Of a DNA stretch of 64,000 nt, positions 8,236 to 62,629 are shown piece after piece. The notes beneath the pieces are model-generated. The model saw only the letters and a program-made list of their open reading frames with translations, had not been told where the DNA came from and made no database searches. The translations under genes and the position numbers were made by a program. Positions within the stretch are counted from its first letter, which is position 1, and the number at the start of each line of letters is the position of its first letter. The stretch comes from Mantamonas sphyraenae STR306. Its lineage: Eukaryota; Protista; CRuMs. The stretch covers positions 62,001-126,000 of the forward strand of contig JAPMXV010000056.1 in NCBI GenBank assembly GCA_026936335.1, read 5' to 3'.

Positions 8236-11200
8236 ATGGCGACCCGGAGCACCACGAGAAGCAAATCATGGACGCCCGCAAACAACGTGGGCATGTCTCC
8301 CGGCATGGACAGCAGCATGATTGTCTCCCCGGCTGCCCTGCACAGCACAGGGCGGGGCAATCGACGACGCTTGCGTAGGGACAGCCTGGATAGCCAGGAC
8401 AGCGCAAGCTTTGCAGACGACAACCGCCGTGTGCAGCGCACCCCGGGTGGTGGCCTGCGTTCCCTCAAGTCCAAGCGCAGCAGCAAGAGCCTAGGAGCAA
8501 AGCCAAGCAGTGGCAGACGATGACCACGACGACGACGACGAAGACGAAGACGAAGACGAGATGCAGACACAGGTTGCAACAAAGTCCACCACTTCGCGTC
8601 GCAAGAGCACAAGGCGTCGTGGGAAACCGCAGTCGGCACACAAGCCACGATCCATCAACGCCAGTCTGATGGCCAGTGCCAGCAATGCAACCCAACTGCA
8701 GCTGCAAGACGACGAAAGCGAAAGCGAAAGTGTGAACGCGAGCCAAGGCGGCAGCCCAAACGCTTTCGATGCAGACATGGGCATGGATGTCGATCTCGGG
8801 AGCGTGGTGGACGGATTCGACGATTCAGCCTCGGTTTCCTCCGCCACGTCTGCCTCATCGGTGTCCTCCACGTCCAGCAGAGGCTCACGGCGGTCGGCAC
8901 GGTTGGCGGCAGAAGAGACACAGCAGGAGACCGCACGAGACACGGTGGCCACACAAAAGCAACGGAGCACACGGGGAAAGGCGCGCACCAGGAAGACTGG
9001 TGGCACACGAGGGGCTCGTGGCCAGGCCAGCACGGCCACATCGTCCATGCTGAGCAGGAAACCCGGCACCAAGAAATCGCGCGCGCAAAAAAGCAAACGT
9101 GCCGAGGTGGAGGAAGAAGAAGAGGAGATGCAGGCAGAACAGGCAGAAACGGACCGATGGAACCAGGCTGACTCGGATTCGGGCCTGAACCAGGAAGATG
9201 CTGCGCAGGGAAGGAGGAGGAGCAGCGAGATGCTGCACAACACAGTGAGCCGACCAGGCGGATTTGCACGACTGACAGCCACAAAGACGCCCAAGCGACG
9301 CAAGCGCACCGGTGCAGGCAGCAACGCACGCGTAGACCCTCTTCTCGACCAATTGTACACACAAAAAGGGCGATGGGCCAAGGCCAGCCTGCTGGACCGT
9401 TGCGAGTTGCTGCGTGAGCTACGCGAAAGCTTTGCCGACGTCAGCGAGACGGTGAGTGGAAGCCACGCAGCCAGGCAGTGTACACACACGAGGCATGCTC
9501 ACACACACACACACACACACACCACATACACACACACACACACGCATACAGTGGGCCACGGCTTTGTGCAAACACCACGGTGTCGACGAGACGCACGAAC
9601 ACTATGAACGTTGCATGGCCGAGGTGTATGGCATGCAGATGCTGCCTGTGGTGCGATTGATCAACCAGTATGTGGATGTTTTGGAGAGTGGCTTGGAGTG
9701 CGAACGCAGAGCCCAACCGGTCTCGTTCAACTCATCGGCTGCAGCACGCCAATCCGAAACTCTGGACAACGGTCAGGTGCGTGTCAGTCCACACGGACGT
9801 GGCGACAATGTGGTTACCCAATGGCTGCGCACAAATGTTCAATGGGGCGGCACAGAGACGGAGTTGCGCCTGCTGCCCGGCTGCACAAAGAGTCAAGCCA
9901 GCGTGTACTGCCACACGCAACCCACTCTGACCCAACCCAGCTCGGGCGACGTGGTCCAACTTGTTGCCCCCAACGCCCCGTCGCGCTCTTCAGGCGTCGC
10001 CATCCTCATCAACCGCGCTGTCAACCACACCCTCGTTGTCCTCGACGTGTTGCGCAAGCTGTTTGTCGAAAACCAGGTCGTGCTCGTGTGCTTTGACGAA
10101 TCTACCCTCCCTTCCCAACCCTATTTCGAGCAGATGCTGCAACCTCTGGTGGACAACGCCCTGGTGCTCACGTGTGCGATCAGTCCCTCCTCATCCTCGT
10201 TGTCGACCACGTCCACACACTCCATCCGAGATTCCGACCTTGCGTACGTGTGTGCACACGAGTGTGTGGCCAGCGTACACCTGAGTGGAGGCTCAGCCGA
10301 GCAACACGACACCCTTGTGTGGGGCAAGACTGCTCATTGGCAAGAGGTGCACAAGGAGGCGCACGAGCCCGTTCTCAAGTGCACCCTCAGCAGCATCCTG
10401 GAGACAAACGCACCCATTGTCATTGTGCCCGGCGGTTGGAGTGCGGACGAGGTGCGGGAGATGGCCTGCAATGTCGCTGCCGGCATCGTCGCAGGCTTCA
10501 GCTCCCGCATCGTGGGCCCGTCCTTCATCCTTTCGCCCGTCGACTGGGAACTGCGTTCGCTCTTCTTTGGTGAGCTGGAGTACTGGCTCAGTCAGGTCGA
10601 CAACCAGCCCAGCCTGGACGCCCAGGCCGAAGCAGTGTACGCCGACCTCATGCAGCGCTTCCCGAAAACCACCAAGCACCACGTCGACGGAAACGCGGAT
10701 GCTGTTTGCTGGGGCATCATCCCAGAGGTTGATGTAGGCGACCCGCAAACCGTGGCTGCGCTGGCTCAACTGTGGCGTGTGCCTCTCGTCGCCGACATGC
10801 CCATCACCTCGCACGACGACCTGGCCATTCTCGCCCAACAGAGTGGTCCTTCCGTGCGTGCATCCTCCTCTGCGGCGGCCCACGATGACAAGGACACCGA
10901 GTTGCAGATGCTTGGCGACGCTGTTGCCGGCATGACTTACCTGGAAAACATCGTCTGGGCCTGCAACGAACAGCTCGACTGCAGCGCTGCCGTTGCCGTG
11001 TGGGTACACCCGTTGGTGGAAGAACAGTCAGGCTTCGCTGTCGAAACCCTGCTCAACCATCTGCGATTCTCCACCATCGTTGTCAACGACAGCGTGCACC
11101 TCGGCCACATCATGCAGAGTGCCGTCCTCGGTGGCTATTGTGGGCGCACGAGCGTCGACCACGTCCACGGAGGCGGTGCTTCTTCTCGCCACAACGGCTT

Positions 11201-19200: not shown

Positions 19201-19461
19201 ACATGCAGGCGAGACGGGGCGTGGTGCGTGTGTGTGTGTGTGTGCAGGCGGTCACAATGGGTGGGGAGGACGGGCGATGCCCGTATGCAAGTGCGTGGCG
19301 AACAGCAAGCGGGGCAGAGCAAGGCATTCACCAGCTGGGCTCCGAGCGGGGCAAAACACGCCGGAATAAGGCACCGGGTGGGGTACGAGCGACTCACCTG
19401 CACTAACAACGCCCACAAGGAGCGACACTGCAACAATCAAGACCGTGAACTTTGTGTTCAT
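13217..19461 (-). CDS. Integrin-beta-like / Sib-like adhesion receptor: signal peptide, beta-I (VWA) domain, 13 cadherin-like repeats, TM and NPxY-like tail; frame break near 13950
   Basis: Exon 1 (19461-19398) encodes the signal peptide; intron 19397-19076. MIDAS DLSGS plus FGLGSYIDKP, DSPEA, STDAAYHQAGDGK and DYPS. VND.P....ED repeats follow, then TM AGAAAAGVIGAAAAF and tail motifs NPLH/NAMY. Confidence 0.88.
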
Positions 19462-19662: not shown

Positions 19663-21662
19663 ATGAGCAGCGCAGCACAGAGCTTTGGCATCAAGACATT
19701 TGGCGACATGCAGACGGAGCAGTACCGTCTGTTCTTCAGTACGTGGCAAAGTGTGGCACTGGGGGAAGTTGAGCGCGTTTGTGGGAAAAGGTAGCGGGGG
19801 GCTGACACAAGCACATGGTTTGACGACGGTGCGGGGTCGCAGCGAACGCTGAGGGCAAGGCCATCTCGCCTTTCCATGACATCCCGCTGGAGGCCGGCGA
19901 GGGTGTGTTCAACATGGTGTGCGAAATCCCAAAGTGGACGAACCGCAAGTTTGAGATTGCCACGGGCGAAGAGCTGAACCCGATCAAGCAGGACACGAAG
20001 AAGGGCAAGCTGCGATCTGTGGCTGACGTGCAGCCGTTCAAGGGCTACCCGTGGAACTACGGCGCGTTCCCGCAAACGTGGGAGGACCCGAGCCACACGA
20101 ACGAGGCCACACAGGCGCTGGGAGACAACGATCCGCTGGACGTTTGCGAAATCGGTGAGTTTTTTGGCAGTGGAGAAGCTCACGGCCACACGCACGAGCA
20201 CTGACACAGACAACGCCACAGGCGAGGCACAGGGATTCTCGGGCCAGATCAAGCAGGTCAAGGTGCTGGGCTGTCTGGCCATGATTGACGACGGTAAGGC
20301 GCAGGGCGGAGGAAAACTCACGGGAGGGTTTTGCTTGCGAACGGGATGAAGAGACAGTGGAGGGTGCTAACAACAACAACACAACGCACTCTTGGCGCCC
20401 ACGGATGGCGGTACCAACACACACACACACACACACACATGGGTGTACACACGCAATGGCTGACAGGTGAAACGGATTGGAAGGTGCTTGCGCTGGACGT
20501 GAACGACCCGCTTGCGAGCCAGGTGAACAACCTGGCCGACGTGGAGGAGTACTTCCCGGGCGTGCTGGAGGCCACCTACCAGTGGTTCCGCACCTACAAG
20601 ATCCCTGCGGGCAAGCCGGAGAATGCGTTTGCCTTTGACGGCGAGTGGAAGGACGTGGAGTACACGTTGGACGTGGTCAAGGAGAACAACGAGTTCTGGA
20701 AGCGTCTGATCAGCATGAGCGTGGAGGAGGCCAAGGAATTCAAGATGTGCACGGTGAACGCCACGGTGGAGGGAAGCCCGGGCCTGACCAGCGATGCCGA
20801 CGCCCTGGCAACAGGCGACGAGTTCATCGGACCTGCGGAGAAGCAGGCTGCGGACGAGCTGACCATGACGCCGAGCCTGTACACGGGTGTGCTGCAGCGC
20901 ACGTCGATGTTTGGCAACTCGGACCTGCAGAGCGTGGCGGCGTCTGTGGAGCAGGCTGTGGCGGAAGCTGTGAAGAACGGCTCGCCGAGCCAGGAGGCTG
21001 TGGTGGCCGCTCTGGATGCAAACGACGCCGTGGGCCTGATTGTGTACAACGGTGAGGCACAGGTGAGCGAGTACAACAAGGAGCGCTACGTGCAGGCCCT
21101 GCTGGTGACGGTGAACGCAGACGAGTCGTCGCTTGTGTTTGGTGTGTACGAGCGCCGTCGCACGGACCTGCAGAAGGAGGTGAGCGAGACGGAGCTGGAG
21201 GGACGCAGCGGCAAGGACTTGATCGCAGCTGGGTACAGCGTGCTGGCCAACCAGGGCGCCAACCTGGTGTTTGCGGCAGGCAAGAGCTGCCAGAACACAG
21301 GCAGCCGCCCGTCGGTGAACACGTACGTGTACGACAGCTGGCGTGAGTTGTTTGCGCTGTGCAAGACCAACCTGAGCATGTCCACGTTTGGCGGTGCCGT
21401 GGCCATCAACACCAGCATCACGGGCCAGGACGGCGTCGTCGAACTGCCGCTGGGCCACCTGGTGGCGGATGTGAACACGCTGCTGAACTGCGGTGGTGTG
21501 TACGAGCAAGCCGAGGCTGTTGTGGATCTGCAGCAGGCTGCTGTGCTGGCCTACCTGGTGCAGGGTGCCGGCGGCGACGCAAAGAGCGGTGACCAGGCCG
21601 TCCAGGACATTGCCTTTGCTGCGGGCGAGCAGAAGGTGTCGTTCACTGCAGGCAACCTGTAA
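19663..21662 (+). CDS. PPA: Family I soluble inorganic pyrophosphatase fused to a C-terminal degenerate FBPase-like domain
   Basis: Motifs [59 protein letters not shown] and GETDWK. Introns 19739-19842, 20155-20221 and 20294-20466. Confidence 0.92.
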
Positions 21663-21715: not shown

Positions 21716-23648
<1,933 letters not shown>

Positions 23649-23692
23649 AATGGACGTCCCGACCTGCGCGCATCGGAGCATCGGAAACCATC

Positions 23693-60400: not shown

Positions 60401-62629
60401 GAACGTGTTGCCCTGTGTCAGACGGGGCATGGTGCGGTCGCCTGCGCTGTGCACGATTTCCAGGTACTCGCTCTCGGCAGGGACGTCGCGCTCCTCAAAC
60501 GCATACTTCATGGTGACCCAGCGGGATTTGTACCTGCGGATGTGGTACTTCTCGAGCAGGTCCTCGACCTCGTCGAGCATCTCCTCCTTGTCCTCGTCGC
60601 TGAGGGGCGCGTCTTGCTTGCGCGGCAGGAAGTGAAGTTCGCGCTCGATGTTGTTGACGGTGATACACGTGCTGACGTGCTGCTTGCGCTCGGCCACCCA
60701 CACCTTGCCAAACAGATACACGGTGGACGTGTTGCCAAAGTTGCGCCCTCCCTGCGTGGGCTGTTCGCACGCGTCGAGCATGTAAAACAGCACACTTCCA
60801 TCCTCCTCCTCCATGCTGGTCTTGCCCAGCTCCTGCGAGCCGGTCTTGGGCGAATCGTTGTCCTGCGACGACGACGCGTTGCCTCCAAACGAGGTAAACG
60901 TGCCTGCATCCAGACTAAAGTTGGCTGCAGCCGACGAGCCTGCGCCAGAGGCGGACGACGAGCTGCTGCTTGCCGCCGCAGACGACGAGGACGACGACGA
61001 GGACGCTGCAGACGGCGGGTTGTTGGCACGCGTCTGGTACACCATCCAGCTGGGCACCTTTTTCTTGCCCTTGTCATCACGTGACAGATCAGAGCCGGAA
61101 GCAGATGAAGCTGCCTGCAGCGAGCGTTGCAGATCCATCTGCAGCTGTTTCTTGACGGCATCCTCCTTTGTTTCAACCTGCATGCCCGTTTGCGTGTGTT
61201 CGTCGTCAGCGTCGGCCTTTGTCGCTTCCTTTGCGTGTGCACTGGGTGTCGAATCGTGTTCCTGCTCCATGGAGTCGGCATCATCCGTGTGTTGGCTCTT
61301 GCTTGTGGTGCGAGGCGGGCTGGAGACGTCGACCACGTCGGTGTCGCCCTCCTCAATAGCGTCACGTTCGTCGAGGCTAGGGGCAGCTGTGTTCTTGGCC
61401 ACAGGTGCCTGCGGCGGCGGTTCACTGTACGGATCAAGCTTGTGGCGGCGCTCGGTGATGCGTACGGTGGAGCCCGTGGGCGGCAGGAGGTCGGGCACGT
61501 AGGCGTCATTGCTGTCGCCGGAATCCTTGCTGTTGGACGTTTCGAGGGCACTGAGCTCGAGGTCGACGTCGAGGCGTTGCTTCTTGGACGAGGGCGTGCG
61601 CACGGGAGCACGCTTCTTGCGGCTGCCTGCATCGCCCGAGTTGAAGCTGGCCAGCATGTCGTCCAGGTCGATCTCGGCCTTGCGAGCACGAGCCTTGGTG
61701 GTGGGACCTCCCATTCGGCTTGTGGCAGCGCTTGCTGCAAACATGGCCGACACGCGCTCGCGCGGATCCACCAGCTCGGGTTCATCCTCAACAGCCTGCT
61801 TGCGTCCACCACGGCGCTTCGTTTTGGTGCCTGCATTGGCGGGGAGGACACGTGTGAGACATTCGCGCTGGTGGTGGCTCATGCATGTGCAGATGGGAGC
61901 GAGGACGTGGCGTACGGCGTGCCATTTTCAGATCGGCCCTTTGCTGATCATCACTCTCGCCAAACTCACCTCGGTTCTTGCGCTTGCGAGGCACTTCAAA
62001 CTCCTCGTAGTCGTATCCGTAGCCATAGTCGAGCTCTCCACCGTGGTCGACGTATCCCGAAGCTGGTGTGCGTATGTGTGTGTGTGTGCGTGGCAATGGC
62101 CAGGTGTCAGCGCGGTGATCAGCAACACTCGGGGTGGTCTCTTTTTTTTGGCGCCAAAATGGCGCGAAAACACAAGCGGGGTTCCCGTGTGCATGAAACA
62201 GGGATGCGGGGACGACATACCTCCACCCTCGTCGTCGACAACAAAGTCATCTTCCTCCATGTGTTCGTTGACGATCTTTGTGTATGTGGCTTCGTCGTAC
62301 TCGTCGTAGATGCGTGCGCCGTCGTCGTCGTCGTCGGCGAGTGCGTGGGAGCGGGACACGCCACTCTCACGCTGTGCACGCAGGTCGTCGAGGGCACTCT
62401 TCTTCTTGCGTCCACGTGCACGGCTGCTGCGGCCACCTTCGATGACGTTGCCCAGATCCAGGCCCTCGGCCTCAATGTCGATTGTTTCCTCTTCCTCGTC
62501 CTCCTCGAGCGCCCGCTTCTTCTTGCGATCCTTCTTGCTGGAGCTGCCTCCATCCTCGCTTGCCTCCTTGTGGGCGGCAATCTCCTCTTCGTCCATTTCG
62601 TCGTCGAAAAGGTCTTCGTCCGATGGCAT
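57410..62629 (-). CDS. POLA1: DNA polymerase alpha catalytic subunit
   Basis: Family B motifs LDFNSLYPSIIQEYN, LKLTANSMYGCLG and YGDTDS; N-terminal DFVVDDEG; C-terminal Cys zinc finger. Introns 62220-62063 and 61969-61831. Confidence 0.97.
62146..62170. promoter_or_regulatory. Clustered E2F-type sites in POLA1 intron 1
   Basis: Palindrome TTTTGGCGCCAAAA immediately followed by TGGCGCGAAAA (TTTTCGCGCCA on the minus strand). Confidence 0.65.

Follow-up and report, generated by a model that had tools for sequence, protein, structure and literature searches.

The protein studied here can be compared with two well described enzyme groups, the family I soluble inorganic pyrophosphatases (PPases) and the class I fructose-1,6-bisphosphatases (FBPases). 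The class I FBPases, such as pig and human FBP1 and E. coli Fbp (PF00316 and PF18913), have a two-lobed fold, and the N-terminal domain of the pig enzyme is well established to bind AMP and to form subunit interfaces. Parts of both groups are joined in a single gene of the protist Mantamonas sphyraenae STR306 (CRuMs). This gene is located at 19663-21662 on the + strand of a stretch of 64,000 nucleotides (contig JAPMXV010000056.1, positions 62,001 to 126,000), which is called the window hereafter. It has four exons and encodes a product of about 551 aa, as read directly from the DNA. The N-terminal ~255 residues are colinear with the eukaryotic family I PPases yeast IPP1 and human PPA1, and their catalytic motifs are complete; whereas the short C-terminal tail of those enzymes is replaced in Mantamonas by a linker and a pseudo-FBPase of ~270 aa.

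Additional domains are also found in other PPases. The acidocalcisomal PPase of trypanosomatids (PDB 5cuy and 5cuu), which was among the PDB matches of the PPase exons, is also a family I PPase with an extra non-catalytic domain. Its added domain is an EF-hand domain that mediates oligomerisation; however, it is located at the N-terminal and is unrelated to FBPase. The bacterial CBS-domain PPases of family II combine a PPase with a regulatory domain as well, and their activity is tuned by adenine nucleotides via this inserted domain. They may serve as a working analogy only, in which the Mantamonas PPase might be regulated in a comparable way; they belong to another PPase family (DHH), use another regulatory fold, and come from another domain of life.

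The C-terminal domain of the Mantamonas protein is a descendant of class I FBPase that has kept the two-lobed fold. The original prediction, which was made from the letters of the window, had described an intact PPase that continues in the same exon into an apparently dead FBPase fold. This description agrees with the present analysis, and the locus is almost certainly a real in-frame fusion with a dead FBPase fold. The combination is a new domain architecture, present at least in Mantamonas and in a truncated form elsewhere. No description of a PPase-FBPase fusion or of a pseudo-FBPase was found in the literature searched.

The FBPase-derived domain and its catalytic site

The relationship to FBPase was detected by several profile comparisons. 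With the single sequence of the window, HMMER matched the PDB FBPases at E 8e-4, and a profile of the two species M. sphyraenae and Mantamonas plastica aligned colinearly with both lobes of E. coli FBPase (2gq1; E 3.5e-6). The hhalign comparison against an alignment of three canonical FBPases spanned 215 columns and FBPase residues 81-331, with a probability of 98.7% (E 1.8e-16). Overall, colinearity with FBPase extends from about residue 17 to 331, and the N-terminal helices are linked via the family of short extensions described below. An exhaustive HMMER search (E <= 1e-3) of 1.84 billion representative proteins returned five matches, namely a fragment from M. plastica, three canonical FBPases, and one WD40 protein. 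FBPase is therefore the only detectable kin, and the domain is highly divergent. The WD40 match (P0051, 1156 aa, E 6e-8) was rejected as a repeat artefact, and the ESM Atlas feature search gave no usable match.

The half that resembles the N-terminal (AMP/allosteric) domain is located at 20856-21338 (+), as indicated by hhalign, the alignments with FBPases, the AlphaFold2 (AF2) model, and the Pfam N-domain match of the M. plastica orthologue. The helices H1-H3 are kept in this half, and the segment IFGIYR is kept as VFGVYE (21135-21152). The half that resembles the C-terminal (substrate) domain follows at 21339-21659 (+), as indicated by the Pfam PF18913 match, the alignments with PDB FBPases, and the conserved-column table; the AGG motif is kept here (21567-21575). 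The structural motifs kept in the whole domain include IFGIY, AAGY, VAD, GG and AGG. The five segments quoted in the original prediction (66 protein letters) are located in the open reading frame (ORF) 20331-21662, in frame with 20880, and HMMER aligned them to the FBPase segments that had been named. The predicted extent (from 20880, ~260 aa) needs one correction: the domain starts about eight codons (24 nt) further upstream, near 20856 (~268 aa), because the N-terminal helices are also present.

The loss of conserved residues was judged on an alignment with 40 FBPases, including the intact FBPase of M. sphyraenae itself; the compared residues are numbered as in pig FBPase. Among the 105 columns with a conservation of >=90% in these FBPases, 32 were kept in M. 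sphyraenae and 35 in M. plastica, mostly Gly, Ala and hydrophobic core residues. At the metal ligands E97, E98, D118, D121 and E280, the window has N, G, a gap, L and Q, whereas M. plastica has Q, G, a gap, V and Q. The G122-S124 segment reads VTV and TVS, respectively. Other changes (window/M. plastica) include R243 to L/R, Y244 to P/K, K274 to A/G, R276 to V/S, Y279 to Q/F, and E280 to Q/Q. Both species lack D118-P119 and Y264-P265. The catalytic loop 52-72 corresponds to a gap of 23 columns in the window, and is unconserved in M. plastica. In the substrate site of the window domain, N212 is kept; whereas the Y215 region is deleted and R243, Y244, Y264 and K274 are lost. About 20 residues are missing after the N212 segment (NE(G/S)xxxxW).

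At the sequence level, SEEE is replaced by YNGE (21045-21056), and DPLDGSS by --LVTVN (21099-21113). In the C-terminal half, RY is changed to LP, YP is deleted, and GKLRLLYE is changed to EAVVDLQQ (21513-21536). The alignment thus confirmed the earlier statement that the SEE, DPLDGS and KLRLLYE motifs are not recognisable. Compared with class I FBPase, the Mantamonas domain is appended to another enzyme, is shorter by ~65 residues owing to four deletions (the loop 52-72 being one of them), has all acidic metal ligands and most substrate-binding residues replaced, and scores below the Pfam gathering values. Since the acidic metal ligands, most of the residues that bind the 6-phosphate, and the loop 52-72 are replaced or deleted in both Mantamonas species, the domain is, judged by its residue set, a pseudo-FBPase in both, and the same residue set rules out FBPase chemistry. 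The fused protein is therefore classified outside the FBPase enzyme family, as the carrier of an FBPase-derived pseudoenzyme domain with the fold present and the catalytic features absent from its sequence.

Gene structure and the pyrophosphatase half

The exons of the fused gene were searched one by one, and the searches, fold models and tree refer to parts of the 551-aa product. All three introns are bordered by GT..AG. Exon 1 (19663-19738, +) begins with the ATG at 19663, and contains 25 codons and the first base of a split Thr codon before the donor CA|GTACGT. It encodes the PPase N-terminus without a targeting extension, which is similar to the N-termini of the full-length relatives P0003 and P0005. 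Exon 2 (19843-20154, +; acceptor AG|CG, donor G|GTGAGT) encodes the PPase core with catalytic motifs, located in a segment of 23 protein letters and in GDNDPLD. Exon 3 (20222-20293, +) encodes a further PPase segment of 23 protein letters, which bridges human PPA1 residue 125 to yeast PPase residue 150; its peptide is also present in the M. plastica transcript P0037. Intron 3 (20294-20466, +; GTAAGG...ACAG) includes a (CA)11 tract at 20418-20439.

Exon 4 spans 20467-21662 and is held by the + strand ORF 20331-21662, in which the first real codons follow the AG acceptor at 20465-20466. Its first part (20467-20774, +) encodes the C-terminal third of the PPase, from ETDWK through a segment of 14 protein letters to NATVEG. 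A linker of ~27 residues (20775-20855, +; 27 protein letters) follows, which has no family match, has low confidence at the start of the structure model, and corresponds to gaps in the M. plastica alignment. The FBPase-like domain then continues to the TAA stop codon (21660-21662, +), and there is no stop between the PPase end and this domain. Because the junction lies inside one exon, no splicing decision is made between the PPase and the domain.

The PPase family model of Pfam (PF00719; cut-off 23.5 bits) matched exon 2 at profile positions 1-59 (E 4.2e-18, 66.1 bits) and exon 4 at positions 83-153 (E 8.6e-12, 45.6 bits). Exon 2 is colinear with human PPA1 residues 23-125 (E 7e-44), and residues 1-100 of exon 4 correspond to residues 150-247 of yeast PPase (E 2e-34). 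The catalytic motifs of family I are all present (E..K.E, R, Y, DNDPLD as DxDxxD, D..ETDWK as D..D.K, and YK). They are located in the first-mentioned 23-letter segment and GDNDPLD of exon 2, in IDDG|ETDWK across the junction of exons 3 and 4, and in WFRTYKIP of exon 4. The catalytic residues are the same as those at the aligned positions of human and yeast PPase; in yeast numbering they are E48, K56, E58, R78, Y93, D115, D117, D120, D147, D152, K154, Y192 and K193. All tested sequence features assign the fused protein to the family I soluble PPases. The PPase half is intact, and it should be able to hydrolyse pyrophosphate (PPi).

The next gene on the + strand is a multi-exon gene for a WD40-repeat protein at 21776-23650 of the window, which is WDR5-like by its repeat peptides. 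Its ATG at 21776 is ~113 bp past the PPase stop, a very compact spacing. The (CA)n tracts with at least six units were found at five places, including 20418-20439 in intron 3, 9500-9542, 19229-19244 (-) and 62075-62088 (-); there were 19 overlapping 12-mer matches, against 0.04 expected. CA runs likewise appear in the translations of the intact FBPase locus and the second PPase locus of this genome, upstream of the coding matches. The CA tracts may be a recurrent intron feature of the M. sphyraenae genome.

Relatives of the fusion in other protists

The nearest protein relative is from M. plastica (EukProt EP00003). In the Trinity isoforms P0001 and P0037 of this species, a single ORF covers both the PPase and the complete domain. 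M. sphyraenae and M. plastica share 40% identity in the domain and 59% in the adjoining PPase segment. Conservation is evenly spread along the domain, and 277 codons are open in both species. These values argue for purifying selection on the domain, which is likely functional rather than a relic. A word search limited to the extension of the window protein found no match, and was probably swamped by common words, as the M. plastica orthologue exists.

Further PPases of ~445 aa were found to carry a shorter C-terminal extension of ~170 aa. These extensions share the motifs QQR..PHGTA(D/E)LS, VFGVYQ and AAGYD..AAA. The profile of the short extensions matched FBPase residues 17-196, which belong to the N-terminal AMP/allosteric domain, with a probability of 89% (E 2e-6), and matched the Mantamonas domain with a probability of 94%. 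Members include proteins from transcriptomes labelled Tiarina fusus (a ciliate; EukProt EP00339 Tiarina fusa P009637) and Vannella robusta (Amoebozoa; UniRef A0A7S4IMC1); these named sources are transcriptomes of cultures with prey, and the organism of origin is uncertain. Other members are from JGI and Tara Oceans metatranscriptomes (MERC sequences). The identity in the N-domain remnant is 50-69% among many marine sequences. In their sources these proteins are annotated simply as inorganic pyrophosphatase.

The short-extension proteins resemble the Mantamonas protein in that their PPase moieties group together, and in that their extension is related by descent to both the Mantamonas domain and the N-domain of FBPase. 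In contrast, their extension has only the N-terminal lobe and a short tail, and the substrate lobe is absent. The one part common to all fusion proteins found is the FBPase N-terminal domain. In a tree of the 105 PPase residues after ETDWK, 14/14 extension-bearing proteins were located on one side of a branch (ultrafast bootstrap, UFBoot, 84; SH-like approximate likelihood ratio test, SH-aLRT, 90). The tree is compatible with a single origin of the fusion; however, the segment is short, and the 25 outgroup PPases were picked by similarity to the window. The PPase-FBPase fusion is not unique to this gene, with a full version in M. plastica and N-domain-only versions in other protist transcriptomes.

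Genomic context and possible role of the domain

The published FALCON assembly of M. sphyraenae has 25.06 Mb in 78 contigs, with 59.19% GC (PMC10492846). The genome searched here comprised 25,061,354 bases in 78 contigs (~59-60% GC). A separate and intact FBPase, which had been proposed as a point to check, was found on contig 69 with the motifs DPLDGSSNID and GKLRLVYE. The search of this genome revealed no other copy of the pseudo-FBPase domain. A second family I PPase is encoded on contig 57 (163884-164405, minus strand) by one ORF. This PPase lacks a C-terminal domain, is extended at the N-terminus by ~75 residues, and is presumably an organellar isoform. The fused gene is probably the cytosolic housekeeping PPase rather than a spare paralogue, because it lacks a targeting extension, the second PPase is extended at its N-terminus, and the domain occurs nowhere else in the genome.

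A link between the domain and PPi-dependent glycolysis was also considered. The original prediction had named a PPi-dependent phosphofructokinase (PFK) as a possible partner, and this part found no support. The only PFK locus (contig C52, 300898-301877) has two exons, which reached 232 and 243 bits with NF005301, a model of ATP-dependent PFK. The locus combines GGDGS with PKTIDND, the pattern of the plant/trypanosomatid-type ATP-PFKs, which are placed in the PPi-PFK-like clade. No pyruvate phosphate dikinase (PPDK) was found in the genome, and the sole PPDK_N match is a bacterial-type phosphoenolpyruvate (PEP) synthase; no proton-pumping PPase (H+-PPase) was found either. Consequently, PPi-dependent glycolysis was rejected as a context for the M. 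sphyraenae genome. The PEP synthase (pyruvate, water dikinase) is encoded at ~115196-117910 of contig C45 (507 kb, minus strand) in a single uninterrupted ORF of 904 aa, which reached 946 bits with the model NF005057 and 883 bits with TIGR01418. Eukaryotes do not usually have this enzyme, and a lateral acquisition is possible.

The pseudo-FBPase probably acts as a non-catalytic module that would set the quaternary structure of the PPase, its allosteric responsiveness, or both. A regulatory or assembly module of this kind is suggested because the domain appears to be under purifying selection and the N-terminal domain is kept in every fusion found. As for its main role, assembly or oligomerisation might tentatively be proposed. 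The homodimer prediction of the C-terminal domain gave a score of 0.00, with the fold of the partner uncertain and the supplied alignment unused, and weighs neither for nor against such a role. That the domain mainly binds a small effector with a phosphate group, such as AMP, is possible but doubtful, and some other protein-protein role seems unlikely. Sensing via the old active site is also unlikely, because its ligands are gone.

Several points weigh against the reading as an FBPase-derived module with a function. The Pfam match of the window domain to FBPase_C (PF18913) has E 1.1e-5 and 25.5-25.7 bits, below the gathering cut-off of 27, and the Pfam scan gave no match of this domain to the FBPase N-domain model. 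The M. plastica orthologue matched the Pfam N-domain (E 7e-5) and C-domain (E 5e-4); the former match has 22.9 bits and is likewise below threshold (gathering cut-off 34.8). With six sequences and no FBPases in the alignment, AF2 gave a predicted local distance difference test score (pLDDT) of only 40.6. When the 40 FBPases were added, the pLDDT was 83.7 and the predicted template modelling score (pTM) 0.86. Foldseek of this second model against the PDB revealed pig and human FBPase as the best matches (TM 0.75, E 1.7e-16), a result that depends on the FBPases in the alignment, is partly circular, and may be counted as consistency only. The AMP-site residues are only partly kept in Mantamonas according to our own reading of the alignment (T27 to N, G28 to S, K112 to R/G, R140 to E or Q, with Y113 kept). 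The four-exon model and a full-length mRNA in M. sphyraenae would rest on sequence logic and the sister species. A slowly decaying relic is also conceivable, if improbable.

Such a relic would descend from a bifunctional PPase-FBPase that lost its FBPase activity, and the domain would have no function of its own, at most being a folding passenger. The heavy loss of conserved residues, the four sizeable deletions, and the short forms without the entire C-terminal lobe are what progressive decay would predict. However, the 277 codons have stayed open in two species whose PPase segment is down to 59% identity, the 40% identity is evenly spread along the domain, and the N-domain remnant is 50-69% identical among many marine sequences, so that this explanation is improbable. 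A metabolite sensor, as in the original prediction, is a rather doubtful alternative. Here the pseudo-FBPase would still bind fructose-1,6-bisphosphate, fructose-2,6-bisphosphate, fructose-6-phosphate or AMP, and couple PPi hydrolysis to the glycolytic or gluconeogenic state. The FBPase fold is retained, the AMP-domain-like half occurs in every fusion protein found, and the residue aligned to Y113 is invariant. Moreover, the helix-start motif aligned to the AMP phosphate-binding loop ATGELT of FBPase is the best-conserved part of the extension, as G-T-A-D/E-L-S in the short forms; it is less kept in Mantamonas, as G-N-S-D-L-Q. On the other hand, the canonical substrate-site residues are substituted or deleted, several AMP-site positions differ in Mantamonas, and the genome search revealed no PPi-dependent glycolytic enzyme, with a PFK of the ATP type and neither PPDK nor H+-PPase.

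It is highly improbable that the domain has remained an enzyme, acting by another chemistry or on another substrate via non-canonical residues. A few polar residues are preserved in both species at the positions of N125, D127 and D251, and the FBPase/IMPase fold hosts diverse phosphatases; nevertheless, nothing comparable to the acidic cluster of the three-metal site is left, M. sphyraenae has lost both the loop 52-72 and the KLRLLYE strand, and the Pfam scans showed no match to any other phosphatase family. As an artefact, the extension would be a chance open frame in the GC-rich DNA (~60%), which yields many long spurious ORFs in the window, or would stem from two neighbouring genes merged by an assembly or reading error. 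This artefact is effectively refuted by the exon and frame that the extension shares with the last third of the PPase, by its significant homology to FBPase, and by the same architecture in the independent M. plastica transcripts. The non-catalytic regulatory or assembly module is the preferred interpretation. A wider proposal, which is unlikely to hold in full, is that the N-terminal (AMP) domain taken from FBPase gives a eukaryotic family I PPase an allosteric response to the adenylate or sugar-phosphate status, as the eukaryotic equivalent of the bacterial CBS-PPases with their regulation by nucleotides. The fusion would then be old, CRuMs and one or more other protist lineages would share it through descent or transfer, and a once bifunctional enzyme would have turned into a regulated one.

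Family I soluble PPases are usually seen as unregulated housekeeping enzymes that pull biosynthesis forward. In this deep-branching eukaryote, a PPase without a targeting extension permanently bears a pseudoenzyme domain that originates from an enzyme of gluconeogenesis; of that enzyme, related protists retain the allosteric half only. The database entries of such proteins read only "inorganic pyrophosphatase", a mis-annotation that is flagged here. If the domain is inert, the fusion would be a curiosity of domain-fusion decay. If the domain controls the activity or assembly of the PPase, the fusion would be the first regulated family I PPase known to use an FBPase scaffold, and a clean example of the conversion of an enzyme into a regulator.

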